Origin: Selaginella moellendorffii | Taxonomy: Eukaryota > Plantae > Lycopodiophyta | Assembly (NCBI RefSeq): GCF_000143415.4 | Contig: NW_003314310.1 | Location: 1,110,611 to 1,174,610 of the forward strand | DNA length: 64,000 nucleotides | Reading direction: 5' to 3' | Shown here: positions 2,662 to 45,724 of the stretch, in pieces | Layout of the letters: every line of letters begins with the position of its first letter | How positions within the stretch are numbered: position 1 is the first letter of the stretch | The notes under the pieces: model-generated | Told to the model about the DNA's origin: nothing | Databases searched by the model: none | The model's input: the letters and a program-made list of their open reading frames with translations, nothing else | Made by a program: the position numbers and the translations under genes

Positions 2662-2789
2662 TTAAGGATGTATAACCCTAAGTATAGTAAAACCTTTAAT
2701 TGATTGAAATAAAGGGTGTAATGGGTATTTTCCTTTTATATTTAAAATTTATAAATTGTTTCTTAAGTTATTTTCTTTGGTTGCTTATA

Positions 2790-3402
2790 ATTAATGATAA
2801 AGACACCACTACCTTTGTAACTCCTTATGCCAATTCATCTATCAACCCCATAATAGAACCTACACTTAGTTTGTGGCCATTTACCTATAGGGTCTAACAT
2901 GATTGCAATTTAGGGCATTTTGTCATTCCATATACCACAGGCCAAAATTCCCACCTCATAAACCAGAATTCTACAAGCAAGGAAATTCATGGTTCCATTT
3001 CTCCAGAGGACAAAGATGATACCTAGTGTCTAAAGCACTACTCATGCCAAAAATTCTAATATATGCCTCTAATACCATGTGAAGAGAAACTAGCCTCTTC
3101 ACCTAACACTTTGAAGAAAGACAGAATTCCAACAACAAGCAGCTCTCAAAAAAAACAAAAAACCTTAAATTGAAGGAATGTGACTCAAGCCACGTGGCTA
3201 ACTCTAACGGTAGGACAGGATGGCATTGGTGGCTGCTACATTCTCTACTTTGGTGGCAGGAAGACCCTTTACTCACGACCTCCAGAGGGGTGAGCACACT
3301 TATAGAAACTGTAAAATGCTTAAACAAACAACATTGTGGCTACATTTTGTCTCTTGTGTTTATAATCACCGGGCCGTCGGATGAAGATCGTGCGAATCCC
3401 TA
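2790..3402 (-). mobile_element. LTR-retrotransposon remnant (LTR end + tRNA-Met PBS), copy 1 of a direct repeat
   Basis: Aligns with 7452-8030; minus strand reads ...CA-TGGTATTAGAG at 3067-3077 (PBS with one mismatch). Confidence 0.6.
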
Positions 3403-3448
3403 ACCCTAGCCAATATATAGGTTTCACGATAGGGTGTCAACAAGCAAA

Positions 3449-6400
3449 ATGGACGAGGAATTGGCTAAGGTGGAGGCTCAAATCGGGCTTCTTGAGCCGC
3501 AGATCCAAGCGGCTGGGGAATCTTTTTTCTCTGCCTTTGAGAGTGGCAATAAATCTCTGGTGGAATATTGGCAGAAGAAGGAAGAGCAGCTGCGGAATGA
3601 GAAAGAGCAGCTGCGGAAGGAAAAAGAACAGCTGCGGAAGGAAAAATTACAGCTGCGGAAGAAGGAACTCCTCCTCCTCCAATGTAATGGTAAGTCATTC
3701 TTTGTGTATTTCTATTTGGGGCGTTTTGCTGTGTGTCGTGGATTATGTGTGGCTATGGTGGCTTTTGGCTATGCTGCCGGTGGACGCATGCTCCCTTGTG
3801 CATCCTTGGTCGTCCTTGTATGGCTATGGCATTTGAGACCCTGGTTTTTTCTTCTAGATCTAATACTAACTTTGTTTTGTTCTGAATGTTGCAGTGCACG
3901 GATCTGGTAAGCAATTGGGAAAGCCCTTTGTTTCCTTGCACATGCATCCCCATTTTCTGTCCAGTTCTTGGTATTCCATTTGTCCAGTTCTGGATGCTAC
4001 TTTAATGCTGTCTGTCTAGTAATAGTTGGGTGTCTTCTCTTTGGGATGACTGGTATGTTTTTCGGCTTGACACTAGAGTTTGCTCAGTTATGCTCACAAG
4101 TCCTTTGTGCGTTCCTCCAAAGCCCCCTTGTTTGCTTTTCATGTCTGTCTTGTGTTTTACTTGGTCATTCCCCGATGCCTTTTCTTTCAAATTTCGTCGC
4201 TGCTAATCTGGTAGCCCTCTCTGTCGAGTACCCCTCAGATCTGTGTTGCGAAATCCCTGACCATAACCACACATGGAAGAGATGACTAACCGAGAAGGAG
4301 CTCTTTCTCCTCTCCCACAGCAGCCTCTCTTTCACCCGGAGCAGCAGCAACTCTTTATCCCGGAGCTGCTCCACTGTCCTGCTTTGCTTGCCCTGTCTGG
4401 TCACGGTTAAGGATTTTTGCTTCCTGAATCTGTTTCTTTCTTTCTGTGTGGATATCTGGTACTCTGCGCATGCTTGGTGGTCATTCTCACCCCTGTTTGC
4501 CCTTTGGCTGTGTTTAATTCTGTGGCCATTCCTCCATAAACTATATTGTACCGCTCACAGCACCAGCGCCACCAGCAGCGGGACTTCCTCCAGCCGATTT
4601 TGACGTGCCTGGTAAAAATGATGTCTAGGGGACTGAATGCCATAATTTTTTGTTTCAGACAAGATCGCCTGGGCCAAGAAGCTGGAGGAGAACCTGACCG
4701 CAGATTTTACTGACGATGGCATTGACTGGACAAGCCATGCGACTTTTCGTGAGCTCCATATTCCCGCTTTCTCTGGAATGGATGGCAGTCAAACATACAT
4801 GTACATGGGCCGCTCACTCTTCAAGGAGATAGAAAGTTTCGTATCGGGCTTGAGACACGGCACTTCGGATAAGCACAACAAACCTCCAGGTGTTATTACT
4901 GGAACTCCGGGGTCTGGGAAGACCACTGCTCTTGCTACTGTGGCGGGATATCTTCGGAAACTTTGGAAGAACACCTCCAAGAAGGTCGTCTTTATCAATG
5001 GCGAAGATTTCGTCGACAATCCCTTGAGGACAATGTGGCTGGCTCTTTTGCTGAGCTACATAAACGACCTTCCAGCCGAGCTTTCGTACCAGGGGTGGAC
5101 CTTGAAAGTATTAGAATCTTGGATCCTGTCGAGATCAGAGCAGCTTTACTTTCTGGTGGACGAGTCCAACGCGTTTGACACCACGCTGAAGAGAGAACCG
5201 GGGGCTGCCAGCGCGAAAAAAAGAGACGAGGCTTACCATTTTATGATGACGATGCAACTGCAGTACGTCGTTGTCTACTGCTCGTCCGTCGGACCTCTGT
5301 GGAGGAGCAGAGTAGTGAGCGACAAAAGCCCTCCGTACATGTTAGTCACAGGTGGTTACAACGTAAGTGGCGACTACTTTCCAACACTGGTGTGGGGCTA
5401 ACTTGTGTGCTTTTCCTTTTATCCAACAGGCTGAGGAACTGCAGGCATATTGCGAACACGAGGTTCGTCGTGCCGGGGGGCTCCAAGCGGAGGTGAGCAT
5501 AGTATTTACCGTGTCTTCCTTTAAAGCCTACTAATGGTTTGGAGTAGGAGGATCCGATTGTGGCGTATTGCAGGCTTCCCACAAGGCAAGGCCACCGGAA
5601 GTTGAATGCGAAACGCATTAAGGTAAATGAAATGTGTGAATGTGTGGCTTACCGACGCGATGAAGCAGGTTGATGGATCTGAAGAGGAGCTGAATTTGTC
5701 CGACATGGAGCTCTGCTCGGAATTCAAAAGTGAGACTGGCTGGGTTCCCAGGCTTGTCGCTCATTACGGGACCGCGATGCTACGGATGACGTACCAGATG
5801 TACGAAACTGGCGTGGAAGAGTATATCCAAGAGGCGGTCAAGAACCCATCTCGCTGGAATTGCTTCATAGCTGTGGTCGGCGGAGTGGACACGATTAGAA
5901 CGGTGTTGCCAGACGCGCTAGACACTCGATGCTTCTACGTGGATGCAGAAACAGAAACAGGAAAATGCCTATCAGATTCTCTGCGTGCGCGCACTATGGC
6001 GCTCATCACCGAGACTCTGCGGTACGCGTCCGACTTGGAGGCTAGGATGGGCATTGGCCAATGGACAAGGCTGATCCGGCACGACGACAACAGTGCTCGG
6101 GTTGGGTGGAACGCAGAAATGGCAACTCTCATTTTCATCAAACACTATGGTATCGTTATTGACACGGAAGGTCTGCAGCTTAACTTCAGACCTGAAGTGG
6201 TTGTCAGATTCGAAGGTGATTTCTCTCCCCAATTTCTGATCGCGGACAATGTTTCTCGTTTCTTCCCACCTGTGAAGTTCAACCACACGGGAGTTGATTG
6301 CCTTGGATCAAACCAGAAGCACGTTTTGTGGGTGCAAATAGCGACTGGGGTGGATGTGGTATTGAAGCATGGAAATACGCTCTCGCGATTTTTGGAGATG

Positions 6401-6739
6401 ACAAAAGGTGACGCGCGAGAGAAGGTTCTTGTCTGGATCTTGGCAGTGGACAGTGCTGATAAGATATGGATACGCAATGGCGTGGGTTACAAGGAGGTGT
6501 TCATTTGTTTTGGCCGTTTGAGTGAAATGCTGAAAGTCATCGACGTTGCATGCGGCAAGCTGCATCTCGAGAGTAGCAAGCACGTCAAGTTGGCAAGCAA
6601 CCCTGAAGAAGCTAAAGCTGAGGCGGAGGAGTTGAAAAAGCTTGGTCGGTGTGGTTCCTTGAGCACGGAGAGTGGAAAGCCGTGTCGGCGTCTTCGTGGT
6701 GCCCAGCCATATTGCCATCACCACGATAAGCGTCCTTGA
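3449..6739 (+). CDS. Coiled-coil + P-loop NTPase + PD-(D/E)XK-like nuclease + C3H Zn finger protein (Crinkler/CR-effector-like), about 721 aa
   Basis: Phase-compatible exons 3449-3689, 3895-3906, 4659-5362, 5430-5492, 5548-5622, 5669-6739; Walker A GTPGSGKT, Walker B LYFLVDE, PVKFNHTGVD...WVQIA, C-x10-C-x9-C-x2-H. Confidence 0.75.
3584..3667 (+). repeat. 21-nt coding tandem repeat, four units (EQLRKEK heptads)
   Basis: GAGCAGCTGCGGAAGGAAAAA-type units read directly. Confidence 0.9.
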
Positions 6740-6839
6740 ATAATCTTCAGCCTTAGATGTTTACATTTAATGGGGAATTCTAGGGCATCTGGTGGCAAAG
6801 CTTGTGCTTCTCGACGATGGCAGTGATGGTGAGGCTGAC

Positions 6840-7110
6840 AGATAAACGAAGTGAGTGCTGTGGAGGATTTCCATCCTTGTCCCCAGGATTTTCCAGAAGT
6901 TGCTTAGCCAGAACATCTTTCAGGTACACTGGTTTCTTCCTCTCCTTCAAAACCTTCTCTTCCTCGATTTCATCACCATTGTTATTGGAAAACTTCACCT
7001 TTTGGCTTGTACATGTTGATCCTGGCTAGCATCTCTAAAATTAGTATCTTTGCAGCACTCTATCCTCTGTCTTCATCCTCTCATTTTACAACAAATCTGT
7101 GTCCACAAGC
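6840..7110 (-). pseudogene. KRI1-like ribosome biogenesis gene fragment
   Basis: KKPVYLKDVLAKQLLE resembles the plant KRI1 motif as recalled; upstream ILEMLARI lies in another frame; no full ORF. Confidence 0.4.
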
Positions 7111-7451: not shown

Positions 7452-8190
7452 ATTAATGATGAAGACACCATTCCCTTTGTAACTCCCCATACCAATTCGT
7501 TTATCAACCCACAATAGAACCTACACTTAGTTTGTGGCCATCTACCAATTTAGGGCATTTTGCAATTCCAGATACCCACCTTATAAACCAGAATTCTGCA
7601 GGCAAGGAAATTCAGTGCTTCATTTCTCCAGAGACAAAGATGACACCTAGTGTCTAAAGCACTACTCATGCCAAAAATTCTAACCTATGCCTCTGATACC
7701 ATGTGAAGAGAAGCTAGCCTCTCCACCTAACACTGAAGAAAGAGAAAACTCCAACAATAAGTGGCTCTCAAAAAAAACTAACCTTAAATTGAAGGAATGT
7801 GACTCAAGCCACGTGGCTAACTCTAACAGTGGTAGAACAGGATGGCATTGGTGGCTTCCACATTCTCTATTTTGGTGGCAGGAAGACCTTTTATTCACGA
7901 CATCCATAGGTAAAATAGAAGCCGCTTAAACAAATAAAATTGTGGCTGAGTTTTCACTTTTTGTCTCTTGTGTTTATAATTGAGTTAGTGGTCTAAACAA
8001 CCGTCGGATGAAGATCGTGCGGTCCCTGACGATTCTAGGGCGCCACTGTGCGGAAACAGCTTCTCAAATGTCATGCATTCTTTGTGTATTTAGCTTTCCC
8101 CCTCGATTTGGGCTGTTTTGCTGTGTGTCGTGGATTGTGTGGTTCCATGTGGCTATGGCTGCTTTCGGCCATGGTTAAGGATTTTGCCTG
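7452..8190. repeat. Copy 2 of direct repeat: LTR/PBS remnant plus deleted 5' end of the CR-like gene
   Basis: Aligns to 2790-3402 and 3695-3770; perfect PBS complement CTCTGATACCA at 7691-7701. Confidence 0.85.
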
Positions 8191-8430: not shown

Positions 8431-8714
8431 CTAAAAGTGGAATCCTTTCTTCTCATCTTCCATAGACTTCTTCTTGCAAATGTTGATATTGATGTTGTTG
8501 TTCTTGATCCTCCTGTGCTTGTGAGAGCCATGGACTGAAGAACCTCCATCTTCATGATCACAGGATGCAACGCTGGTTCTACCAATGATGAATCCTTCTC
8601 ACCAACACCATCATCCAAAGACAAAAGCTCCCTTCTACAAAAAGAAGAAGAAGACAGTGCTATCTGGAGAGTGGCAAGAGCAAAAACCAGAAACAACTCC
8701 AAAGAAGCCTTCAT
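8431..8714 (-). pseudogene. Secreted His/Asp-rich peptide paralog, frameshifted
   Basis: Signal peptide MKASLELFLVFALATLQIA; the family C-terminus HGSHKHRR..NINICKKKSM..KKGFHF* is in a different frame. Confidence 0.7.
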
Positions 8715-9138
8715 TGTTATTGATGAGTTTAATCAATGCTTGCTGAGTGCCAATGGTTGGAACATGGAGGCCTTAAATAATTACAAGTATGCATGCATTT
8801 CATGCAATCAACCATTGCTTTATAAAATTTCAAAACTTATGCTATAAAGATATAATGCCAATATTCTGCTCCTCTCTTGATCAAATCCCACATTTCACAT
8901 GTATTATTTATAGGAGGTCAAATATATTTTGGAGGTATGTCATTGATAGCATGGTTGCAGAAACCCATACTACCTTTTCATAATGATCGGCAGGTTGTAA
9001 ACCACACTTTGTCAAATTTGCAAGGACTGTTAACATGGATGAATGTAAATGAATGACAATCACGTTTTTAACTCTAGAGACCAGAGATTGTAATACCAAG
9101 AGCTAAAATGCATTGCATGTAGGTCCCATTCCTTTAGT

Positions 9139-9710: not shown

Positions 9711-10059
9711 TCCAGCTCAATAGCCGTAAGCAGGACGAGATAGAATCAGTGAGTGATTTTGCCTGTGTAATGACAAGGCAAAGCAACAAGAAGTTTAAGA
9801 AAAGAAGAAGAACAATTTGTGCAGCAATCTCGCTCTCTTGCCAAGGATCAAGCACATAGCATCCTAAATCTACCATGTAAAGACAAGAGAAACAAAACAA
9901 GGATTTTGGAATGCTAGCTGCTGCTGGCTGTATGCTTGGCACTATTCTTATTCACACATAAAAAAGTGGAAGAGACAAAGCTAAGTTAGCCAAAAGTCAT
10001 AATGGTTATCTTGATTCCCTCAATAGAAAACCTAGATTGGTCTGTCTCCAAAGTTTTTG

Positions 10060-10260
10060 ATCCTGGTGATGTTTGGATTGCCGTCCATTGCCCATTGCCG
10101 TACTGTGATCCCGCCTCTCGAGCATGAGAACTTTGTATTTTCTTGAGAGAGTTGCGGCAAGGAGCAATCCCACGGTTCCACCACCCACGATTATATATTC
10201 CGTAGAGATTGATCAAACAAAACTGCGCTAGAAGAATGTAGGCAACGATCGAGCCCATGT
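10060..10260 (-). pseudogene. GMC oxidoreductase 5' fragment
   Basis: IIVGGGTVGLLLAATLSRKYKVLMLER; deleted copy of 20930-21260. Confidence 0.85.
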
Positions 10261-10349
10261 GCAAATCTTTAATGGAAGAAAAACTACATGGATTTCTGGC
10301 TTAAAAAACCATATATCTAGAGTGATCTATCCACACATAATAAAAACGT

Positions 10350-10670
10350 GATGTTGTTGCTACCAAAAAGATTGTTGTGACCTTTTTACTGACTTTCATG
10401 ACAAGTCCAGATGCGGATCGCCGAGCACCTGGAGGACTGCACAGGTCTTATGACTCCCAGAGCAAACGACCTCGTCAACTCTTCGCTGGTGTGCGAGCTT
10501 GGATGATGTTCGAGGCTCACAGTGGTCCAGTTTTGAAGCAATATGATATAGCAGCGTACAGCGGCCATTCCAGTCTGAAAGCCCTGGAGTCCACGAAGAG
10601 CGTGGCTGATGCCATTAGCTGCGTTGCCAAGATGTACGCACTCGTGTGGTCCGGCCCCCCGGAAGGTGTT
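10350..10670 (+). pseudogene. PPR gene fragment
   Basis: Deleted copy of 21360-21880. Confidence 0.6.
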
Positions 10671-11433
10671 TGACAATAGGTAGAAGAACGAGCTCTGCTC
10701 TACAGCATTAGCTATATAAGAATATTAGTGAAGCCAAACGCCAAAACATTCATTACAGTTTGGGATACGAGAAGGGATTGCGATTCCAATAGCTGAAGAA
10801 CCTGTCTTCTGGGACGATCTGGCTGCTTGAAAGAAGCCCTGAAAGAAGCCAAGGAGAAGCTGCCAGACGGAAACCGCTCCAGAAAGTTTCACGACACAAT
10901 GTATACTTTTCATCAGGAGAAGATGTTTACAGTATATGACCATGTCGCACCTCTCTCTCATCAACTGCTTTAGAGTTTTTGGTAACTCTCCAGCTGAAAA
11001 TGCATCTATTTTCAATCTCTATAGAGAGGGAAGGCTTTGTCACCGCCGGACTTCTTCAATTTGGATCATACGAGGACTCCAACCTACAGAATGCACTATA
11101 CTATAGACCACCGAATGTTGGAAGAGCACAGTCAATTTCTAGCTCTTCCCTTACAGCGTTTGACATACGCTGAGCCAGATGCCCAGAATAAGCTGTGCGA
11201 TCAGGCTTACAAGTTGTCAAAGGTCTACTTCAATTTTAACATTTGAGCATAAGTCAACAGCATCACCACCCAAGAGCATGTTTTTGGCCCTGATCATTTG
11301 GAAGAACTCCCAATCTTCTTCACGGCTGCTGAGCTTTTTATAGATACTGGCCTTTATATTTTCTTCTGACGAACTTACACAAGAACTGCCTTCTCTTAGA
11401 TAGCCTTTCCATAAATACAAAACTACTTAAACA

Positions 11434-11517
11434 TGTCAGAAGTGGGATTTGAACCCACGCCCTCGTGAGAGGAGCAGAACTTGAGTCTGCCGCCTTAGAC
11501 CGCTCGGCCATCCTGAC
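11434..11517 (-). tRNA. trnL-CAA: tRNA-Leu(CAA)
   Basis: GTCAGGA/TTCTGAC acceptor stem, anticodon arm GCAGA-CT-CAA-GT-TCTGC, long variable arm, GGTTCAAATCC T-loop. Confidence 0.95.
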
Positions 11518-11688
11518 AATATATGTTCATAATCTTAGATTTTGGTTTTTATCGAGCAATGGTTGAATGCATGAAGCATTCAACCACTTGGCAATGCATG
11601 CTGGAGTATAACATAATATATAAGGCCTGAAAGGTTTAGCAATTATTCAGCAAGAATTGATCAAGTTCCATTAACCTCTACTGCAATA

Positions 11689-11799
11689 ATGAAGGCTGCT
11701 TTGGTGTTGTTTCTGGTGTTGGCCTTTGCCACTCTCCAGATAGCTTCTTCTTCTTTGGGTAGACGGGAGCTCTTGCACACGAAATCTTCACGATTTTAA
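11689..11799 (+). pseudogene. Truncated secreted peptide paralog (36 aa)
   Basis: MKAALVLFLVLAFATLQIASSSLGRREL then early stop; upstream region matches 22433-22603. Confidence 0.7.
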
Positions 11800-11824
11800 G
11801 GAGCACAAATTAACAAACTGGAAT

Positions 11825-12015
11825 AAAGTTTTGAACGGTCACCTCAAGCCCTGGTAGAGCATGGAGAAGCAGCGCCGGAGAATGGAGGCAAATCGAGCGG
11901 TCGCTTTGGCCGGGCACCAGATGTGTCCTGTCGCATTTCTCACCGCCAAAGCTGCAGCGTCTTGAGCAGATCTTCTCGGGAAGACGATTTAAAAGATCTG
12001 AAACGCCAAAAGTTG
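11825..12015 (+). pseudogene. Rearranged fragment of the ZRANB3-like helicase 5' end
   Basis: Matches 23070-23180 (direct), about 23180-23245 (inverted) and 24020-24060. Confidence 0.75.
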
Positions 12016-14129: not shown

Positions 14130-16356
14130 GATACCGCCTAGCGGGGACTTCTGCGACTGCTACACGATGCTCAGATCTCTACACGTTTACTAGCCAGCAG
14201 TATCGCAGGAATATCATCCAGGCTTTTGGTTCTCTGGCAAACACCACGGATTACAAGACGGTGATCATAAACAGCAACAAGAATGGCTCTACAGTTGACA
14301 CAGTGTTTGGCCTCCTACAATGCCGTGGAGACATTTCTTCCAGCGACTGCAATGCCTGCGCTTCGACTGCCATCAACTCTCTCAATGGATCCTGCGTCAG
14401 AAATTCTACAAAGGGGGGACGGGTGCAGGAAGAGACGTGTTTTCTACGCTACGAAGATCACTACTTCTTTTCGAATTACTCTGGAATCGACTCGGCTCTG
14501 GTGAACTGCTCGTCCGGCATCAGTAACTCCAGCCAGTACCGTTCGAACACAGACACCGGTTTTGCGTTTCTGAGAGACCGTATTCCAGGTAGTGCTGGTG
14601 GCTTCATGATAGCTGTTGCTGGAACTTCTCCCGACAACAGCGCGTACGTTCTGGGACAATGTGTTCGTGATCTGAGCACTTCTGACTGCACGACCTGCTT
14701 GGAGAAAGCCAGAAGCTCATTGTCCAGTACTTGGAATGGCAGAGATGGAGGAAGTTGCTACCTGGCTGAATGCAATATGCAGTACGAGAGTTTCAAGTTT
14801 TTTGGTGGAGTTCCCGTCAACGCAAGCAGCAGTACCGCGGTTTCCACTTCCGGCGGAGGTGATTGTTTTTCATTCTTATTGTTTGTTATATTTTTAAACC
14901 TTGTTGTCTTTCTGAAGGTAGCAACAAAGCAAGAAATGTAGGCATAATCGTGGGAGTAATCGCCGCAGTGCTGCTGGGTGTTGGTATAGTTCTTGGTATG
15001 AATTGGTGGTGGCGAAAATTGGTAAATTCATTTGAAGCCAGCTTGCTTGGAAGCACTTACGAATTTTCATTTCTGCGATAGCCAATGACTTACAATGTAC
15101 CTTGCATCGGGGGCCAGTTACGTTCCCATATCGGATGCTGAAATCGTCCACTGCAAACTTCGACGAAAGCACAAGCTCGGTGAAGGTGGCTTTGGTGCTG
15201 TTTACAAGGTTAAGTTTTATTGTTTTTGCAGCAGTGAAAACTCATGGATCTCTTCCTGAACAGGGATATCTTCCAGATGGATCCGAAGTGGCGATCAAAA
15301 AGCTCACCGTCACCTCCAAGCACGGTTAGCTTCAGTTTCTGAACGAAGTCAAGGCAATCAGCAGCGTGCAGCATCGGAACTTGGTAAAGCTGCTGGGATG
15401 TTCTATGGAAGGCACAGAAAGGCTTCTTGTCTATGAGCTCCTCAAGAACAACAGTTTGGAAAACGCTTTGTTCGGTACGTTTGATCGTTTGTACGTTTGT
15501 ACGTTTGATCTCTTTATACTTCTACAGATTGTATTGAAGCTGGCTGGCCGTGTCTCAGGCCCTGTAGAGAAGCCCCTGTCCTGGGAAACTCGCCATAACA
15601 TTCTCTTGGGAACTGCTCGTGGTTTAGCATATCTCCATGAAGACTCACAAATACGAATAGTACACAGGGACATCAAACCGAGCAACATTCTCCTGGATGA
15701 GTTCTACGAGGCCAAGATAGCCGACTTTGGATTGGCAAGGCTGTTCGAATCGTCCCATCAGCTGGAGGTTCTAACCACCAAAGCTGCAGGAACATAGTAA
15801 GTTCCATAGTACTTGATGTTTTACAACATGCTTTCGATGATCTTGCAGTGGCTACATGGCGCCAGAGTACGCACTCAATGGTCAGCTGAGCGACAAGATC
15901 GATGTTTACAGCTATGGAATCGTCATTCTGAAAACCGTGAGTGGCAAAAGAAACCGAGACAGATCACTGGTGGACGAGGTACTTGAAAAAATTAGTGTTT
16001 GTATTTAGATTTGTAAGGCTCGCGGAATTGTTTTCCAGGCATGGCAGATTCACGCTGACACAGGAGGGGTATTTCGCGACTTTGTGGACCCGAAACTGGA
16101 GAACGAAATTTCCAACAGCCAGGCGCTGCAGCTGGTGACACTGGCGCTCATGTGTACTCAAGGCTTGCCTCAGGCGCGGCCGTCAATGCCTCACGTCGTC
16201 GCGATGCTGGCAGGTTACTCAAACGCTCACGTTCCAGAGAACTTGAGCCGATCATCTTCAGTCTCCTACACAGCCATGCGATCCAATGACTCCACCAGGA
16301 TCTCCTCGGGAGCTTCCAATGAATCCCCGCAGATTTCCACCTTGGGGCCACGATAG
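14130..16356 (+). pseudogene. Cysteine-rich receptor-like kinase (2x DUF26, TM, kinase), disrupted
   Basis: QCRGD/QCVRD DUF26 C-x8-C-x2-C motifs, TM helix, [18 protein letters not shown]; frameshift before KLGEGGFG (about 15170), TAG at 15327-15329, no signal peptide. Confidence 0.8.
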
Positions 16357-19518: not shown

Positions 19519-21259
19519 TTAGCATGGAGGGATCTCGTCGACGATACTTTTCCCAACGTACCTATCAGTTCAGAAAACTAAATTAATCAAACTTAAGATA
19601 AAACTAAATATACCTTCCAAGCATCATCAGAGTCGCTTGTGGATTGGTTCCAGGCGAGATGTATAAAACGCTAGCATCCACCACACGTAAGTTGTGTACC
19701 CCAATCACCTTGAAGTTGGAATCTACCACCTTGTTTACCAAGCAGCCACCGTGATAGTGATACAAAGTTGCGACGTTTCTTTTGCAGTAATCTGCAAGGG
19801 TGCTGTTGATGACGCCGATCCTTGAATTGCCCCTGCTGGGAGAAATCACTGTTCCTCCGGAGGGGAGAGTTTGATTATCATAACGAAAAGGTTTGTAAGC
19901 GTTTGAGAGCAATGCTTTCTCCACTGCATCCACGCCTGCAACGCAAACTTGCAAATCTCTTGGCTCTTGGAAATAGTTGAAACTTACAACTGGATTGTCA
20001 TCCACATTTATGGTGGCCAGGTAGAGCTCGCCCATGGAAGCTGGGCCATTGACCTTCTCAACAAGGAAGTTCGCGTTGGGCGCTAGCGTTCCTCCGCTAT
20101 CACCCTCGATATAGCTCCCAAAGGACGTGATCCCGACGCTTAGACTCGTGGAGACCTCGACGTAAGATGGCGATGGGACGAACAAGTAGACTGTGGGGTT
20201 GTCTGCCATATGTTTCCCGACCTCTGGGAAATCCTTGATCACTTTGATGCCTTTGGATTGAAGATGGCTTCCAGGTCCGATTCCACTTAGCATTAGGAGC
20301 TGTGGACTTGCAATCGCACCTGCGCAAAGAATTACCTCGCTGGATCGCTTGGGGGAAAGAAATGCTTTCCGGATACGCCCAAGCCTGTCTTTAAACTCCA
20401 CTCCATACGCTTTTGGCGATACACCTTCAAGAGAAGGGATATGAGCAATGTTTCTCTCGAAAACAAAAACAAACCTTGCAAGAAGAGAATTCGTAGAACT
20501 GTGGCATGGAGGAGAATTTTGATGTTTCTTGGATTCGCATAGACAAAGAGGTCTGAAGCTGGCCTTCGAGTTCCCGAATGATCGAATATGGTACCAGAAG
20601 TTTTGGTTCCAACCAAGTGATCATACGTCGCGTTGTTGTCGGGTGTGATTCCAGCTTGGAGCAGTGATTGCCGGAACGCTGTCTGGTATGGCCCAAGCTG
20701 ATCTGGAATGGAAGACACGACACTCTCAACCCAGCGGTAAGACTGATTCACCAGGCAAAGATTGAGACCCAGAGTAGTGATGAAAGATTTCTCGGCGTGA
20801 GAATAAACCCCAGCATTTACACTGGATCCTCCTCCAAGAACTCGAGCTCTCCCGTTTCGTACGCCCTCTGTGGAGAAGAAGACCTGGAGTGGCGATTGGG
20901 GGCTGTCGTCGAATAGAATTGCTCCAAAGTTTTCGATCCTGGTGATGTTTGGATTGCCATACGGTGATCCCCCCCTCTCGAGCACAAGAACTTTGTATTT
21001 GCTCGAAAGCGTCGCGGCAAGGGGTGATCCCGCGGTTCCACCACCCACGATTATGTAGTCATAGTTAAACAAATCCGAGCTCGAGCGATCGGTGGCTTCT
21101 TGTATAAAACTGAACGTAGCTGTGCATGATTCATAGAGATCGATCAAACAAAACTATCTGTCGATCAATTGAAAGATTCTTGTGGAGGAAAGTAATACCT
21201 GATGATGTCGAGCTCTGGAAGAGAAGCACCACAAGAATGTAAGCAACGATCGGGCCCAT
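19519..21259 (-). CDS. GMC oxidoreductase, HOTHEAD/mandelonitrile lyase-like
   Basis: Signal-peptide exon, YDYIIVGGGTAG, ARVLGGGSSVN, YHYHGG, GTNPQAT; four exons in phase. Confidence 0.9.
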
Positions 21260-21479
21260 GCCCCAAATCTCTAATGGAAGACAACTTCGATGATTCCTCC
21301 TATTATATCTCCAGTGATCGAGTCAAACATCGATGAGTATTTATTCCAAATCACTACATGATGTTGTTGCTACCAAAAAGATTGTTGCGATCTTTTATTG
21401 ACTTTCAAGACAACAAAGAAAAGTAGGACTTCTGGTTTGTGACGTGCGTGACCCCAGGTAGGATTTCTCTTTGTCTCGC

Positions 21480-22260
21480 TTTCCGAGTACTTGCATTTTG
21501 GGTCATCGATCGGCGCCAATCGCAGTACAGGCAGGATTATGCTTCCTAGGAGAGGAATTACTCCGTCTACATTGTCCGCCTGTGTACCCGTCTCAAGGCG
21601 CTGGTGGATCCACAAGCAGCTCGTCCGGATGGGGATCGCCGAGCACCTGTGCTGAGAGTTGGACTTTGGGCCGAGCTCGTCCCTGCGTATGACGTCCAGA
21701 GCAACGATCTCGTCAACGCTTCGCTGTACACATGCATACATCGCGAGTGTGCAAGCTCGGATGATGTTTGGCGGGATGGCTCACAGTTGTCCAGTGCTTT
21801 GGAGAAAGATGATCAGCGGCCATTCCAGTCTAAAAGCGATGCAGTCCACGAAGATGTTGGCTGACGCCTACTGCTGCGTTTCGTTTCTGCGATTCTCCTG
21901 GCTCCGGAAGCGGGGCAAGAAGTTCATGAAAAGTGTGGCCTTGAGCAAGATGTTTTCGTCGGCAACGCACTCGTGGACATGCACGGAAAGTGTGGCAGTG
22001 TTTGAGAGAGCCCGGACGGGGAGAAAAACTGGTTTTCGAGGAACTTCATGGTGGAAGCGTACTGCTCTACAGGCTACAGCACAGAGGCTATACAGGCATT
22101 CTTACAGATGCTACAGAAACATTCACGAGTGTTTTGGTTAGCATGCGGACATGCTGGTTTCATATGAGAAGGGATTCTCATGGCAGTGTGTTGTCAGTTT
22201 ACTTACTTACGATGCTCTAGCAGGATCGGATGATGCTGCCAAAGTCGAGAAACAATGACT
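21480..22260 (+). pseudogene. PLS-class PPR gene remnant
   Basis: EQDVFVGNALVDMHGKCGSV near 21943-22002; multiple frameshifts. Confidence 0.7.
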
Positions 22261-22348
22261 TGACGCGATAAACTGCAAAACGTAAAGGTAAAGTGATATA
22301 GTTTTTGTTCTTGAATGTGAATGTATAAATATAAAGGGTACATTTTCA

Positions 22349-22432
22349 TGTCAGAAGTGGGATTTGAACCCACGCCCTCGTGAGAGGAGCAGAACTTGAG
22401 TCTGCCGCCTTAGACCGCTCGGCCATCCTGAC
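22349..22432 (-). tRNA. trnL-CAA: tRNA-Leu(CAA)
   Basis: Identical to 11434-11517. Confidence 0.95.
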
Positions 22433-22603
22433 ATCATATGTTCATAATATTAGATTTTGATTTTTATCAAGCAATGGTTGAATGCATGAAGCATTCAACC
22501 ACTTGGCAATGCATGCTGGAGTGTAACATAATATATAAGGCCTGAAAGGTCTAGCGATTATTCAGCAAGAGTTGATTGAGCTCCATTAATCACTACTACA
22601 GCA

Positions 22604-22966
22604 ATGAAGGCTGCTTTAATGTTGCTTCTAGTTTTTGCCTTTGCCACTTTCCAGATAGCAGTGTCTTCTTCTTCTTCTTTGGGTAGAAGGGAGCTCAATG
22701 GTGTTGCTGATCAAGACCCATCAGTGGAGCCATCATCCAGTTCTCTAGTGCATCCTCCTGAGATGGATGATCATGATCATGGAGATGAAGTTCATGATCA
22801 TGAAGATGATGGAGGTCCTCCAGTCCATGGGTCTCACAAGCACAGGAGGAGCAACAACAACAACAACAACATCAACATCAATATCAACATCTGCAGAAAG
22901 AAGTCTATGAATCATGAAGATTCAAAGAACAAGGACAAGGAGGACAAGAAAGGGTTCCATTTTTAG
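22604..22966 (+). CDS. Small secreted His/Asp-rich protein, 120 aa, unknown function
   Basis: Hydrophobic signal peptide, GRREL, DDHDHGDEVHDHEDD, NININICRKK, KKGFHF*; TATATAA upstream; three paralogous remnants in the window. Confidence 0.7.
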   Translation: MKAALMLLLVFAFATFQIAVSSSSSLGRRELNGVADQDPSVEPSSSSLVHPPEMDDHDHGDEVHDHEDDGGPPVHGSHKHRRSNNNNNNINININICRKKSMNHEDSKNKDKEDKKGFHF

Positions 22967-23111
22967 TGTAAAAAGGATGGATCCTCTCCATCATTTGTAG
23001 ATCAATAAAACCAGAAATTCTTGTCTTGAGGAAAGTAACTGAATATTCCTTACAAAAAATACAAAGGCCTAAAGTTTTAAACGGTCACAATTCCTCAAGC
23101 CCTAGTAGGGC

Positions 23112-26100
23112 ATGGAGATCAGCGAGGAGCAGCGCAGGAGAATGGAGGCGAATCGGGCGGCCGCTTTGGCCCGGCGCCAGAGATCTTCTCAAAATGCGGA
23201 AGCTTTGGCGAATTCCGGTGAGAAATGCGACAAGGCACATCTGGTTTCTCTCGAGATTTGCTCGGCAAGCGAGTTTTTCGTAGTGCCACCGCATTCCTGT
23301 TGCTCTGATGTACTTCGCCGAGTGCACCATTGGCTGGAATCGGTAAGTCTAGCTATCGTTTGAGAAGAAAAAGAATTTCTTCTGAAAGTTCATGGTTTTT
23401 TTTCCCCTTTGTAGGTGCCACCATTGTGCTGGAAATCATGCGATTATAATCGCTGTCCAGTCTATAGACTGAGAGACTACGAAGTCGTGACAGACGTTTT
23501 GCAGAGGTTGCCTGGAGTGAAGTTGGAGCACATACCATTGAGCACACGCAATTCTTTGAGGAGCTGCTCTCACCAACTAAGAAACGCTGACCAGTGGCTT
23601 CCCTTCCACCCGAGGCATGCTCCAGACTCAGTCGTGGACAAGCTCTTGCTAGGCCTGCCTTGGAAGTTGAAGCAATACTTGTTGCCTTTTCAGTGGGATG
23701 GTATTCGATATGGTTTGCGAAGAGGTGGACGCGTGCTAATTGCCGACGAGATGGGGCTCGGAAAGACTCTTCAGGTAATCTTCGAGTACGGTTTCTGTTG
23801 TTCTCATGACTTGTTTTTTGACACAGGCCATCGCCATCGCGGCATGCTATCTAAACGACGGACCTTTACTTGTTGTTTGTCCCGCTAGTCTACGTTTGGT
23901 CTGGGCCGAGGAACTAGAGAGATGGCTTCCATTTCTCTCACCTTCAGATGTTCATCTTGGTACGTTGATGACTTCTCTTTCCAAACGTTTGATTCTGTCT
24001 ACCTGTGCAGTGTTTGGACGAGAAGACGATTTAAAAGATCTGAAAACACCAAAAGTTGTTGTAATATCTTACAATATGCTAAGACGGCTTCGGGAGAGCA
24101 TACTTCGTTGCAGCTGGGAGACGGTAATCGTTGACGAATCACACAATATCCGATGCTCGAAGCGTCCTACTGATTCCGAAGAGGTACGAGTTTACTTTTA
24201 TTTTTTATATCGGCTGAATAGTAACTATAGACTACAGCGCTGATGGAAGTGGCTCGAGCTGCGCCAAGGGCGGTCTTTCTTTCCGGTACTCCATCACTCT
24301 CTAGGCCTTTCGATATTTTTAACCAAGTTAACGCTTTGTGGTAAGAATGTTTTCTTTAATATTTAACAAAGAAAGCTCATCTGCATTGTTTACAGGCCGG
24401 GCATATTGGGAAAAAACAAGTATAATTTTGCGCGAAACTACTGCAGCTCAAGTAGTGATGCAGCGTACAAGGTGTCAACTGTGTTATTTTATGACGTAGT
24501 CTCACCATTATTTTCAGGATTACCAAAGAGGCGTCCGGCTGGAGGAGCTAAACATTTTGTTACGAGAAATAGTTATGGTATATATGCCACTAATTTTTAA
24601 TTTGTTTGAAGTTAACTTTACTTTCTCCTAGATACGAAGGCTGAAGGATCAGATTCTGACGCAGCTGCCTCCAAAGCGAAGACAAATTATACGATTGAGA
24701 CTAAGCTCCGGCGATATGTTGGAAGCGAAGGCTTCTATTGATGCTGACGGAGGTAGTTGTACACTCTAAATTTGTGTCGATGTCTTGTCTTGACTATCAA
24801 ATTCTACAGACGAAAGACAGCTGAATACGCAAGAAATTGGAATCGCAAAGCTCAAGGGTGTGACGGACTGGCTCTCAAACAATCCCTTTTCTGCCGTCAA
24901 AGAAGAAATGCAGAAACTAATCATATTTTGTCATCACCATAAAGTTATGAACTCGCTACAGGTTTGTATCTTATTAGTAAACTTTAGCTTATAAGTTGCT
25001 GCAACAGGAATTTATCGTAAGCAAAGAAATTGAGTTTATTCGGATAGATGGGCACACTGATGCGAAAGACCGTCAAAAGGCTACAGAGATTTTCCGGCAA
25101 AAAGATGAGGTAAAATGTTTTATCTAGTTTCCCGTTGACACGTTACTGGAATTGAAGGTAAAGGTGGCTATTGTCGGGGTCACAGCGGGTGGTGTTGGGC
25201 TTGATCTGTCTGCTGCACGCAATGTGGTGTTTGTGGAGTTGCCGAAGACTGCATCAGAACTTGTACAGGTCAGTTGCATTTTAAGTCATTTGCATTAACA
25301 ATCGGTTCGTTAGCAGGCGGAGGACAGAGCACATCGAAGAGGTCAGAAAAGCGCAGTTAACATTTATATATTTTGCGCTAAGGTATGTTTCTCTTGAACT
25401 TATTAGTCGAGGTTCTAATTTGCATGCTGCAGGAGACATCAGATGAATGCCACTGGCAATCACTCAGTAAAAGTCTTGAAAGGGTAACTACAATGACGAA
25501 CGGATCAGAAGATGCTATACCCGGTTTAGAGGTCTAGAGTTCTCTCCTGGCATGGCTGTTTATTGACGTGCTTGTTTGGTCCAGGTGGAAACTCTTATGG
25601 ATCAAACAGAGTCAGGTGATACGAAAGCGTGCAGTTTGCTACGGAGATGTCAGAACAGTCTGCCGCCGGATGAAGTCCCAGAAGGAAGACGGGTTGTGTC
25701 TGAAACCGCGCAACAAAATGCGTCCAATGAAAGCTGGAATTTTGATGCACACTTGTTGATGTTTGAGGTACATAACAGGTATCACGTTGTGATTGAAATG
25801 TCACCGGCTTTTTTCCAGGTAAGCTCGAACACTGGCCGAGTTCATCTGTACAAGAAGTCGCTTGAAGAGCCGCCTGTCGTGACCGCCTTAAGTGAGAATT
25901 TCAAACCCGAGGATTTAGAGAAGCTGGAACAGATACCAAGCACCGAGAGGAATTTGTTGCTGCCAACCTGTCTCCTTGAGAATACTTCTCTTGTGGACGC
26001 CTCAATGGCTTTCATTCGAGAATGGAAGACATTACGACCGGTTCATCGAAAAAGGCTGTATGGAAGACCACTGCAGCTACCTTTATCAAGGGCACTCAGC

Positions 26101-41966: not shown

Positions 41967-42517
41967 CAAGGGGGAAAGCTTTTGTAAAAGAGAGATTCTT
42001 CTCTTGGAGAGCCAGGCTCGATGAGAAGGGAATGTCCAAAGTAAAAACAAGCAAAAACTAGGATCAACTGTGTTGTGTGGAAAATGGTGGTATTGGGTGT
42101 AGTACGCACGGAATACAGCGCGAGTAGCAGGAGGAATATTTGTCTACGTTGGGGTTTCAAGGTGATATTTTGAGGTAACAGTCATGTGATATATTTTCCT
42201 TGTGGTAGTGATTATAGTTTTACCAGCAAATATTTCAAGCAAAGCAGATATTATAATTGGCTTTGGCGATAATAAATAGAGATCGGCCTCAGAGACGGTT
42301 TGTATCCAAGTCGTAGAAAATAATTGGATTTTATCACTTTAAACATTTTGAGCACCTTATGTGTTCGAATCCTGTCCAGAGCAAATCTAACGGTAAAAGG
42401 TCTTTTTACCAGGTGGCCAGATCATGAGGTGGTGCAGTTAGTGAGCCACACTTGGCACCCATGCAAGAAGAGAGAAGGCCAGCAAATAGCGAAAATTAGG
42501 GCTAGATCTAGCGAGCG

Positions 42518-42880
42518 ATGTCTCGATTGATCCATTTGACGAGGAGGTTTGTCCTGTCCGGGCAATGCCAGAGCGCGAGTAGCACGAGTTCTTTGGTCGC
42601 GTCTTCTTCTTCGTTGGAGTTTGGGTTTGGGCAGAATTGGAGCTTGGATCAGCAGCAGCAGCAGCGATGGTTTTGTGGCCAGAGCGGATCGAAAGGTGGA
42701 GGAGAACCGGATGATGATAGCAAGAAGAAAAGGTATGGCAAAGTCGGGCACAATGTTGCTGACGAGAGCTACAAGGAGAGGGTGAAGAAGAAGAAGGATG
42801 GGGATGAGGAGGAAGAAGAGAGCTTGGAGAAGACGAACTATGATATTTCAAAGAGAACTCGGCCCTCGGGTGAGGAGTGA
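42518..42880 (+). CDS. Hypothetical small protein with a mitochondrial-type presequence
   Basis: Single-exon 120-aa ORF; R/S-rich N-terminus, highly charged C-terminus. Confidence 0.4.
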   Translation: MSRLIHLTRRFVLSGQCQSASSTSSLVASSSSLEFGFGQNWSLDQQQQQRWFCGQSGSKGGGEPDDDSKKKRYGKVGHNVADESYKERVKKKKDGDEEEEESLEKTNYDISKRTRPSGEE

Positions 42881-42928
42881 TCGAATCCAAGAGTTTGGAT
42901 GTTCCACTATACTCTATCGATAATTTTT

Positions 42929-44223
42929 TTACTTGTGTGGTTCGATCAAAGCGAGTAGGTTTGCCATGTGTTCTTGGCGAAGAGTAGCGACGGCTTCCAA
43001 GCTCCCGTCTTGGAGGCCCGATGGAACAACACGGACGTAGCCTTCGCAGGGACCATTTGTGGGTGTGGCAAGGATTGGAGTTCCAGATCCAAAATCCATG
43101 TCGTAGAAGGGCAATCGAGCCCAGCTTGTGATGACCAAGTTGGGATCGAAGCTGATCCTCGTGAATCCGGCGCTGTCGTGCTGCTCTGATTTGGGAGCTT
43201 CTCTCAGCTGGAGAGCCACGAAATCCACCACCGATCTCAAGCGCTCGGCCTCGGACGCCCTCTCGATACTCGCGGCGATGATCGAAGCTCCAAATTCCAG
43301 TGGCTTGCCCGTGAGATCTTCCGCGCTGACCTCACAGCGCGCCCGGAACAGGGAGTGAGAGTCCACGGCGACCATTGACCGGGCAGTAGAGCACCGTGCG
43401 GCGGCCGCCGCTGACTCCCCTGGCCATGGTGATGAGCCGCCAGAGATGGACTGCCAGGCACACGAATGTGGAGCTAGATCCGCCAGCTCTTTCACTGTTT
43501 TTGAGCCGATCGAGCTCGCCTTTGCGAAAGTGGATCCGTCGAGTGATGAGAGCTTTGGATTCCTCCGGGGAGAGGACTGTGTAGTGCTTCGGCGTGAGCG
43601 CGTACTCGGGGTGCTCGAACTCCGGCATGGGTGGATCCCGGGGCATCATCAAGGTACGATCGGACGAGCGACTGTCCGAAAACTTCGCGGCTTTGCCGCT
43701 CGCGAGTGCTGCCCAGTCGGCCAGGAAGCCGGGGACCGCGTTGCAATCGGCGACGTGGTGCTGGATTCCAAGCCCCAGCGCAAATCCTCCACAGCTAAAG
43801 CTTGTGATCTGGAACGAGTAAACTTCACTGATCGAAATCTTGCTTGAATCTAGATTGTTACCTGGACAAGCTAGGTGTAAGCTTGTGAAGATTTCCATGA
43901 CCATCATCGCTACCCAGAAACTCGACCAATGTTTCCGTCGCGACGGCTTCCACCCAAAAAACTCCCTCGTTGTTAAGACGAATAGCCAGATCCCCAGATT
44001 CATCTCTTCCAATCCGACCCGCGAAGCCCAACACCTTTTGGAGCGAATCTTTCAAGCGAGAAGAGGTACTCAGCTTCGAAGAGAATGCAAGGAGGAGTGG
44101 GACGTGATAGCTTGGCATCAGGGCATCCATCGGGCTGAGACGTAGCCATGGAGAATGATCGCTGCTCCCGTCGTCGCTCTGAATCTGGATCCATTCCGGC
44201 AACCGCTCAATCGTGATGACCAT
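42929..44223 (-). pseudogene. BAHD acyltransferase, frameshifted
   Basis: HHVAD and DFGSG motifs; the FFGNA segment is deleted near 43350 with a frame change. Confidence 0.8.
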
Positions 44224-44344
44224 GATTGAGAATGAATTTGTGCTGAACAGTGGAAGAGCTATTTGTCGTGATCGAAAATGGGAATGCGACTTGATTCCTT
44301 CATTAACCATCTATGGAGTGTCCATTGCTGATCAAAGGAAAGTG

Positions 44345-45724
44345 TTAACAACCTTTGTTGTCATTGAAAATGGAGTAGACAAGCTTGTCCATATGAGAGT
44401 TTCTTAGAGTGGGCACTACTGCTAGACCTCCGTCACCATTGCTAGATGGCACCACTCGCACGTAACCTTCGCAAGGGCCCTCCGTGGGGGTGGCAAGAAC
44501 CGGACGACCGAATCCAAAGTCGAGCTCGTAAAAGGGCAGTCGAGCCCAGCTAGTGATGATCAAGTTTGGATCCAAAGAAAAGCGGGGAATCTCTTCCGCC
44601 TGGGGAGAACTACGCTGCTGGTCCTCGTGTTGTTGCTTCAATGCAAGGAAATCCACAACCGATCGCAAATAATCCTCCTGCGATAAAGACTCTAAGCCTG
44701 CGGCAATCAGCGAGGCCAAGTCACCCAAGGGCATGGCAAGGATATCGCAGACCGTGGCGCATGCGCACCGCCTAAACACCGCATTGCCGAAGAAGTGAGC
44801 CGGGAGCGCGAGCCCACGGCGGCCGTTGACCGGGCACAGTACTATCGTCTTGGACTGGACGTTGACTTCACGGGCGGCGGTGATTGACTTCCAGAGGTAT
44901 GCAGACAGGGAGACGTACGTGGAGAAGGGTTGATTGGAGCGACCTTTGTTACACTCGGACTTGAGGAGCGCGAGACGCTCTCTGGTGAAGTGGATCGTGC
45001 GGGTGACGATCGACTTGGCCTCGTCGCTGGAAAGCATTGTGATGATGTTGGTGGTGTAGTCAGAGTGGTCAAAGCTAGGGCGTGGAGGGCGGCGGGGCAT
45101 CATGCAGGAGCGGTCAATGGGCTGCCCGGACAGGAGTTCCTCGATTGACCGCTCCCCCCTGGTCAACTTTGCGAGGTCGAGGAGAAATTCCGGGAGCGCG
45201 TTGCAATCGACGACACGATGGTTGACTCCAAAACCCAGTGCGATCCCACCGCAGCCGAATCGAGTGATCTACACCACAAATGTATGCCAATGGATGAAAA
45301 CATCGGGAGAACATACCTGGAGTAGAAGAGGGATTCCCATGTCCACGGGATCCTGCGAAGCCATTGGCGTCAGCTCTTGGAGCTTTGCGAGATCCTGATC
45401 CGAAAAACCCTGAAGCGTTTCCTGGGTGGAAGCCTCAATCCAGAGGACGCCGCAGTCCTCGTCCTGATCGTTGAGATAGATCCCAAGCTTCCCGGACTCG
45501 TTCCTCCGGATCCGCCCAGCTAAATCTCTGTAGTGGCACAGCACCTGCTGGAGCGCGCGCTCCAAATCGGCCACAAATCCTTGAGGAACCGGGGAGGAGA
45601 ATGCGAGGACCATAGGGCTGTGAATTAGTGGCATGTGGATATCGATCGGGGTGAGAGGAAACCATGTCGAGAGAGGATTCTTGATCGACGACGACACCCA
45701 TCTCAAAGAGCTTCTCTCAATCAT
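44345..45724 (-). CDS. BAHD acyltransferase
   Basis: Two exons split at the Q intron; HRVVD, FFGNA, DFGFG. Confidence 0.9.

Follow-up and report, generated by a model that had tools for sequence, protein, structure and literature searches.

The window analysed here is a 64,000-nt stretch of the Selaginella moellendorffii genome (contig NW_003314310.1, positions 1,110,611 to 1,174,610 of the forward strand), and its subject is LOC9648117, an intact plus-strand gene with its ATG at 3449 and its stop codon at 6737-6739, as read directly. The Walker motifs and a modelled fold place a P-loop NTPase directly upstream of a domain with a restriction endonuclease (REase) fold, with a helical header in front and a zinc finger at the C-terminus (Table 1; all positions are those of the window).

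The coding sequence was determined from splice-site context and from spliced contigs of four public runs from four studies, aligned to positions 3300-6900. These runs had been guessed to be RNA, and this was confirmed because the contig joints lack introns. The coding sequence consists of seven exons (2217 nt) and encodes 738 amino acids (aa), and every intron is of the GT..AG type. Contig joints were observed at 3689/3895, 5362/5430, 5492/5548, and 5622/5669, the second and third of these in three to four runs and the last in four. The contigs of runs X1 and X7 lead from exon 1 (3689) through a 12-nt microexon to 4561, and the joint 4611/4659 appeared as a loose end in the contigs. Split codons were checked by hand and each exon was read in its own frame. 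The resulting model is identical at every letter to RefSeq isoform X1 (XP_024542323.1, here P0008, 738 aa), which is annotated only as an "uncharacterized protein". The exons were used singly as queries, and later queries used P0008. We found no paper naming LOC9648117 or its paralogs in the literature searched. These results indicate that LOC9648117 is a real, transcribed, and correctly spliced endogenous gene, annotated yet uncharacterised. Variant joints and letters in the contigs indicated that close paralogs are also transcribed.

A preceding reading of the letters alone, hereafter the sequence-only reading, had joined six exons into about 721 aa. Its intact frame and the co-splicing and expression of its exons were borne out by transcripts from the four studies, and its exon count and length were replaced by those given above. 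The heptads, Walker A, Walker B, GVD-x9-VQIA, and terminal finger that it had listed were all re-read where it had placed them. The candidate exon of the six-exon model near 4321-4405 was ruled out, as contig joints bypass it for the 12-nt microexon. Also, the old JGI model EFJ17351 (P0001, 724 aa) is wrong in its 5' part compared with the seven-exon model. A part of intron 2 (3939-4538) showed near-complete contig cover in three runs, at a depth like that of the exons, with single-nucleotide polymorphisms and deletions of 3 nt and 10 nt; this may represent a retained intron, an alternative start of isoform X2 (597 aa, from M142), or paralog transcripts. Run X13, which carries a differing organism code (B), contained approximately half of the sampled LOC9648117 words and may come from a close relative or from a mislabelled or mixed sample.

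In the header encoded by exon 1, a leucine recurs at every seventh residue within a run of E, K, R, and Q, and from this pattern aa 1-80 could form a weak leucine zipper or a charged single helix. Crinkler/RHS-type proteins can have alpha-helical headers as an alternative to the ubiquitin-like Crinkler domain; Pfam searches gave no match to the Crinkler header PF20147 in LOC9648117 or family members.

The NTPase covers approximately aa 100-345, and its Walker A, Walker B, and YMGR-x~30-GxxGxGKT layout are kept across the paralogs (alignment A1). A GR followed by ~30 aa and GxxGxGKT is a layout typical of ORC/Cdc6-STAND ATPases. In Pfam, the region matched nSTAND5, AAA_22, AAA_16, NPHP3_N, and NACHT, all below the curated cut-offs. 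A PADLOC match to mad8 (5e-6) covers the ATPase of P0008 alone and implies nothing more specific, and the other matches in Pfam, NCBIfam, and PADLOC were sub-threshold P-loop matches. When the family profile was compared with PDB sequences, ORC1 was found at E 0.08; apart from this, searching the PDB by sequence and by profile yielded no usable match. The model of this domain is poor (pLDDT, the per-residue model confidence, of 53), and its best alignments, to ORC/Cdc6, NLR NACHT, BrxC, and TnsC at Z 5-6.7, are therefore a class-level hint. Of the expected STAND/AAA-like NTPase, the P-loop NTPase is thus borne out, and its placement in the ORC/Cdc6-STAND class, by weak hidden Markov model (HMM) matches and a low-confidence model, is likely but weak.

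The C-terminal domain (aa 383-690) was modelled with AlphaFold2 on a seven-sequence alignment (A2). The pLDDT was 61 overall and ~70-90 over aa 540-660, and the order of secondary structure elements gave an alpha-beta-beta-beta-alpha-beta core. This model was compared using VIA-align with 48,161 representative chains and with Foldseek's top 1000 chains, and the two sets agreed. All alpha/beta matches with more than 120 aligned residues were PD-(D/E)xK nucleases (Z 5.7-8.3). The top matches were the R.BspD6I small subunit (Z 8.3, 131 aa) and Nt.BspD6I (8.0-8.1, 141-145 aa), followed by McrC (7.8), Shedu (7.7-7.8, 136-147 aa), EcoT38I (7.3), SduA (6.9), and LlaBIII (6.5), with Can1, FokI, Card1, and Can2 further down. 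Other high rows in VIA-align were long-helix artefacts, and YopJ-family acetyltransferases, the weak top rows of Foldseek, were not taken as meaningful. On this model, we assign aa 524-690 to the REase fold with moderate confidence, in agreement with the PD-(D/E)XK fold expected from the letters alone.

The active site was mapped by laying alignment A1 on the strands of the model, that is, by topology and alignment and not by residue-level superposition. The invariant E532 sits in the helix ahead of the sheet (alpha1). In the "PD" strand, LOC9648117 has D592 and two of the seven aligned sequences (P0004 and P0014) have Asn, and the "(D/E)xK" strand reads V-Q605-I-A607 in LOC9648117 and Q/K-x-T/S/A in all paralogs, with the invariant H616 and R632 just past it. 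The (D/E)xK lysine is absent from every aligned family member; therefore, classical restriction-type catalysis is not supported. We consider the domain likelier to recognise DNA or act as a scaffold, or to be a non-canonical nuclease using E532, D592, Q605, H616, and R632, than to be a classical cutter.

The sequence-only reading had proposed an NTP-gated nuclease. An active enzyme of this kind, of restriction type and serving immunity or cell death by cutting DNA, would suit the modelled fold, the invariant E532 in alpha1 together with D592 in LOC9648117, the invariant H616 and R632 near the site, and the birth-and-death dynamics of the locus, with its pseudogene and truncated copy. QxK-type REases exist with Q in place of E, and Q605 would be such a replacement. 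Furthermore, mutations in the REase domain of CRN8 abolish CRN cell death, whereas disruption of its kinase does not (PMC5289972). However, all members have A, T, or S in place of the catalytic lysine, P0004 and P0014 have Asn in place of the aspartate, and the likeness to characterised active nucleases is limited to the fold. We consider an active nuclease unlikely.

The Cys and His residues of the C-terminal CCCH finger are kept across subfamily A (defined below), while the adjoining residues vary. In alignment A1, its first two cysteines, C710 and C721, share their columns with cysteines of the paralogs' PHD fingers. In Pfam, the finger matched only DUF5763 and DUF7140, both sub-threshold. 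The WRC domain of plant GRF transcription factors is a C3H finger with the pattern CX9CX10CX2H. The finger of LOC9648117 resembles it as a basic CCCH knuckle with G-K-x-C, Y-C-x-x-H, and the near-equal spacing C-x10-C-x9-C-x2-H, but a Pfam search with aa 690-738 gave no match to WRC (PF08879) at E <= 10. The description of an extra WRC-like finger thus holds for its spacing and not for the WRC HMM, and the arrangement is not unique, as paralogs have a PHD finger at the same place.

LOC9648117 is a member of a multi-copy family. A phmmer search with exon 7 returned five clusters, every one from S. moellendorffii. Subfamily A comprises LOC9648117, LOC9643764 (740 aa, 85-90% identical), SELMODRAFT_444913 (L001; on the same scaffold as the window, GL377614.1, L001 5113-7939), and a partial copy (L002) on a 3.6-kb contig. 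The exon-4 equivalent of L001 contains a 1-nt insertion and in-frame stops, and its ratio of non-synonymous to synonymous substitution rates (dN/dS) against LOC9648117 is ~1.1; L001 is therefore a pseudogene, which the annotation divides into a 122-aa and a 582-aa gene. L001 also lacks 21 nt in the heptad repeat region, and its repeat number differs from that of LOC9648117. Approximately 650 bp of 5' flank has been duplicated together with the subfamily A gene copies, and no second coding copy of LOC9648117 was found in the window by tblastn.

Four or five further S. moellendorffii clusters (P0002/P0010, P0003/P0013, P0004, P0005/P0014, and P0019) are 24-30% identical across the core. The PHD paralogs include LOC9639839, LOC9653127, LOC9632773, SELMODRAFT_406521, and SELMODRAFT_449370, and Pfam PHD was found at the C-terminus of six of the seven aligned sequences and of P0019, where LOC9648117 has the CCCH finger. 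Alignment A1 revealed common motifs along the entire protein, namely YMGR, GxxGxGKT, hhhhD(D/E), GG(Y/F)N, TGxVPxL, DTRxFY, RIGWNxExA, FNHxGxD, VxQ(I/F)x, an invariant His, and R-x3-L-x-W; VLVW is a further motif common to LOC9648117 and the PHD paralogs. The PHD paralogs are thus homologous to LOC9648117 in the NTPase, linker, and REase-fold regions and have one intron in common with it, but they differ in their N-terminal headers, lack the exon-6 insert, and carry the PHD finger on its own exon. In P0005, header and PHD finger lie on separate exons, and in LOC9648117 exon 1 encodes the header and exon 7 includes the CCCH finger. The common intron, which is of phase 0, lies right after GG(Y/F)N, and in LOC9648117 precedes exon 5, occupies the same alignment column in LOC9648117 and P0005, whose subfamilies are 25% identical, indicating that the family diversified as an intron-bearing eukaryotic gene.

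Between P0005 and P0014, pN/pS was 0.445 (20 synonymous and 30 non-synonymous differences, p = 0.005), and this paralog pair is under purifying selection. The dN/dS check proposed earlier therefore found constraint in this pair, and not significantly in LOC9648117 itself. The N-terminal exon of the pair (aa 1-91; L003 1501-1773) looks beta-rich, with alternating hydrophobic strands and no Pfam match, and it might be a ubiquitin-like header of the Crinkler/RHS (CR) type. In P0013 (EFJ38803, 836 aa), the old model extends into a Cupin_1-like tail that is not in the RefSeq model; two genes have probably been fused in this annotation.

The sequence-only reading had also considered a selfish element. 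A mobile element that copies itself around the genome, with the gene as its cargo or its own protein, would agree with several close copies that have ~650 bp of 5' flank in common, with the direct repeats that flank the gene in the window, and with the transposon origin proposed for CR modules (PMC5289972). However, only a handful of loci exist, and the copies retain introns, one of them common to 25%-identical paralogs. What looks like a "downstream repeat" is a truncated tandem copy with no counterpart downstream of L001. A repeat search found no terminal inverted repeats of at least 40 nt around the gene unit, and no transposase, integrase, or reverse transcriptase is present. The hallmarks of transposable elements in termini, copy number, and enzyme are thus absent; target-site duplications were not looked for. 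The flanking ~600-bp direct repeats had been considered as long terminal repeats, but the repeat is the 5' flank of the gene and its downstream copy a truncated duplicate, and since L001 lacks that downstream copy, they are not such a pair. The common intron, the few copies, and the ordinary neighbours argue against an active mobile element, and we regard this explanation as very improbable.

Apart from this gene and its truncated copy, the window contains ordinary plant genes, encoding HSP90, a QWRF protein, a GMC oxidoreductase, a BAHD transferase, and a DUF26 protein (Table 1). The statement that most neighbours are decayed thus applies to the gene's own duplicates (the truncated copy and L001) and not to the rest. 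The consecutive open reading frames (ORFs) of the BAHD and GMC genes may reflect introns or decay. Two tRNA-Leu(CAA) genes, at 11433-11518 and 22348-22433 (both on the minus strand), lie ~10.9 kb apart with equal Rfam scores, and 10046-11921 is a diverged duplicate of 20922-23181 (64-90% identity in pieces), including GMC-oxidoreductase-like sequence. Inverted-repeat arms at 8622-8860 and 11514-11775 (86 nt with 80% and 62 nt with 74% complementarity) enclose ~2.7-2.9 kb immediately downstream of the gene's truncated copy, and a tRNA-Leu gene adjoins one of the arms; the arrangement may be a foldback or transposon remnant.

Table 1. Features of LOC9648117, its flanks, and the remaining window
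Feature	Position	Strand	Basis or remark
5' flank, putative promoter region, part of duplicated unit	2763-3404	+	78-79% identity to L001 flank and to 7452-8030 copy
Exon 1: start codon, charged heptad-repeat helical header, aa 1-80 and base 1 of codon 81	3449-3689	+	joint 3689/3895
Four 21-nt tandem repeats, EQLRKEK-type heptads	3571-3675	+	repeat search, family D1
Exon 2: 12-nt microexon	3895-3906	+	contigs of X1 and X7; AG and GT on either side
Exon 3: Pro/Ala-rich linker	4561-4611	+	joints, splice sites, agreement with P0008
Exon 4: P-loop NTPase core (YMGR, Walker A, Walker B, GGYN)	4659-5362	+	234-aa open frame
Walker A GTPGSGKT (G183-T190)	4901-4924	+	direct reading; G188, K189, T190 invariant in A1
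Walker B LYFLVDE (D269 invariant)	5144-5164	+	direct reading; A1
Exon 5	5430-5492	+	joints 5362/5430 and 5492/5548; GT..AG
Exon 6: basic insert, subfamily-specific	5548-5622	+	joints in 4 runs; insertion versus PHD paralogs in A1
Exon 7: helical linker domain, REase-fold domain, CCCH finger, stop	5669-6739	+	joint 5622/5669; 356-aa open frame
REase-fold core, ~aa 524-690 (modelled)	6092-6592	+	AlphaFold2 model, VIA-align, ESM Atlas shape search
Active-site-equivalent strands: D592 ("PD"), Q605-I-A607 ("(D/E)xK", no lysine)	6296-6343	+	model secondary structure and A1
FNHTGVD-x9-VLWVQIA	GVD onward 6290-6343; D592 6296-6298; Q605-I-A607 6335-6343	+	direct reading
E532 (further invariant residue)	6116-6118	+	A1
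H616 (further invariant residue)	6368-6370	+	A1
R632 (further invariant residue)		+	A1
CCCH finger C710-x10-C721-x9-C731-x2-H734	6650-6724	+	direct reading; Cys/His kept in subfamily A
Truncated tandem copy: 5' flank and piece of intron 1, without coding exons	7452-8188	+	blastn within window and against L001
DUF26 stress-antifungal ORF	14261-14941		
GMC oxidoreductase, several consecutive ORFs	19604-21147	-	
BAHD acyltransferase (PF02458), several consecutive ORFs	42438-45724	-	
Intact HSP90 ORF	54963-56435		
QWRF-family ORF	58236-59450	-	

According to the review PMC5289972, which covers Zhang et al. 2016, CR proteins consist of variable headers and C-terminal modules, and a P-loop NTPase with an REase is the commonest of these modules (more than one quarter of them). 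The review also states that CRs were reported in land plants in 2016, that eudicot versions with Myb-type headers are thought to act on DNA inside the cell, and that the modules, for which a transposon origin has been proposed, are also thought to derive from prokaryotic ATPase-nuclease systems. Trypanosome RHS proteins have been tied to chromatin and RNA polymerase II transcription of their own cell (PMC6393297).

We searched the ESM Atlas, whose matches are leads that carry no alignments or E-values. In the shape search, the first rank was a 725-aa Mucoromycota cluster with a Crinkler header (TM 0.44 over 167 aa), and McrBC, PDDEXK_3, and PDDEXK_2 clusters came next. In the language-model search (aa 100-700), Mucoromycota clusters of 547-700 aa scored 0.97-0.98 and five clusters with a Crinkler header 0.93, and archaeal ATPase_2+Hjc and bacterial Mrr_cat+ATPase clusters followed at 0.89-0.91; one Mucoromycota cluster was common to both searches. 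Exon 7 alone gave weak feature leads to Euglenozoa clusters (0.83-0.89), one of them with Pfam RHSP PF07999. As these leads are at the fold level or alignment-free and no HMM or phmmer link was obtained, CR membership is not proven. The Crinkler/RHS architecture assigned from the letters alone therefore stands at the fold level, through the C-domain model and the Mucoromycota neighbours, and not as sequence homology. LOC9648117 probably works like a CR NTPase-REase module and derives from one.

An NTPase-REase pairing unrelated to CR proteins could instead have come from a prokaryotic module (McrBC, Shedu, TnsA/TnsC, or ATPase_2+Hjc) or from fusion of an ORC/STAND ATPase with an REase in the lycophyte lineage. 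Such an origin would account for the lack of a sequence-level CR link, for prokaryotic nucleases as structural neighbours, for the archaeal and bacterial feature matches in the Atlas (0.89-0.91), and for TnsC among the ATPase fold matches. By contrast, the highest Atlas scores, by shape and by features, belong to eukaryotic Mucoromycota clusters (547-725 aa, some with a Crinkler header), and an exon-encoded variable header joined to a constant module fits the CR layout. We regard an independent origin as distinctly improbable. PMC5289972 describes CR modules as thought to be derived from prokaryotic systems, and thus the two readings overlap.

The reading to which we incline, with a little more belief than doubt, is that LOC9648117 is one of a small family, known to date from S. 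moellendorffii alone, which combines an ORC/Cdc6-STAND-like NTPase, a helical linker, an REase-fold domain, and subfamily-variable ends, and for which we infer a role in the nucleus on DNA or chromatin, NTP gating, and CR ancestry. The protein would act in the nucleus on DNA or chromatin, and its zinc finger would target it there, the CCCH finger by binding nucleic acid and the PHD finger of the paralogs by reading histone tails. The heptad-helix header would mediate self-association or partner binding. NTP binding and hydrolysis by the ORC/STAND-like NTPase may switch the REase-fold domain between states, and this domain may engage DNA, either by recognising or clamping it or as a nuclease of a non-canonical type. 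Given the birth-and-death pattern, a role of the family in genome defence or immunity is plausible.

Several points weigh against this reading. An exhaustive phmmer search with exon 7 against 1.84 billion cluster representatives found no homologues outside S. moellendorffii, and three further homologue or profile searches gave Selaginella proteins only. Phmmer, profile, and HMM searches of the family gave no link to Pfam RHSP or Crinkler or to a CR protein, and the Atlas leads are of the kind described above. Both domain models were built on seven sequences (pLDDT 61 and 53), the poorer one being that of the NTPase. For the C-domain model, Foldseek against the PDB gave nothing at E <= 0.001, and a VIA-align Z of 7-8 is "middling" by the tool's own scale. 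Also, the dN/dS of LOC9648117 against L002 was 0.70 overall (p = 0.24) and 0.42 for exons 4 and 7 (p = 0.07), not significantly below 1. The place of the protein in the cell, its ATPase activity, and its binding to DNA are predictions.

A more specific form of the favoured reading is that a CR-type module was domesticated as a plant nuclear factor, with an exon-shuffled PHD or CCCH finger and a heptad header, and serves in lineage-specific surveillance of chromatin or DNA, e.g., against transposons or invading DNA, maybe after an ancient transfer from Mucoromycota symbionts. We hold this form to be rather doubtful. Oomycetes and fungi secrete CR-type modules as effectors of cell death, and it is from these and from the RHS family of trypanosomes that the modules are best known. 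A plant-encoded, expressed CR-like family would provide a tractable case of a conflict module reused in the nucleus of its host. The family couples an ATPase and nuclease-fold core to zinc fingers of chromatin- or nucleic-acid-reading types, and the loss of the lysine raises the question of whether the REase fold is a cutter, a sensor, or a clamp. New here are the subfamily with CCCH finger and heptad header, the corrected gene model, the family-wide lysine loss, and the common intron. The gain is limited in that land-plant CR proteins were reported in 2016 and the gene had already been annotated as uncharacterised.

Among known systems, the CR NTPase-REase proteins, especially those of Mucoromycota, resemble LOC9648117 in the order of variable header, P-loop NTPase, and REase fold and in cluster lengths of 547-725 aa. 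In the Selaginella family, in keeping with CR proteins, the header has an exon to itself and varies among paralogs, and the genes are multi-copy with pseudogenes. In contrast to CR proteins, to which it has no detectable sequence or HMM similarity, LOC9648117 begins with a charged heptad helix instead of a ubiquitin-like Crinkler header; its family has a C-terminal zinc finger (CCCH here and PHD in the paralogs) and lacks the (D/E)xK lysine. Its host, a free-living vascular plant, is a further difference, and no secretion signal was evident by eye. The RHS proteins of trypanosomes, which act on the chromatin and RNA polymerase II transcription of their own cell and not as secreted toxins, set a precedent for nuclear work by a CR-type family (PMC6393297). 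Compared with them, the Selaginella family has no Pfam RHSP match and a far lower copy number. To our knowledge, RHS proteins lack zinc fingers. Finally, the best solved-structure matches of the C-terminal domain, McrBC/McrC, Shedu SduA, R.BspD6I/Nt.BspD6I, and LlaBIII (Z 6.5-8.3 over 120-147 residues), are only 6-13% identical to it and keep D...(D/E)xK where the Selaginella family has Q/K-x-A/T/S, but the prokaryotic ATPase-coupled PD-(D/E)xK nucleases and LOC9648117 follow a common logic, in which an NTPase is coupled to an REase.

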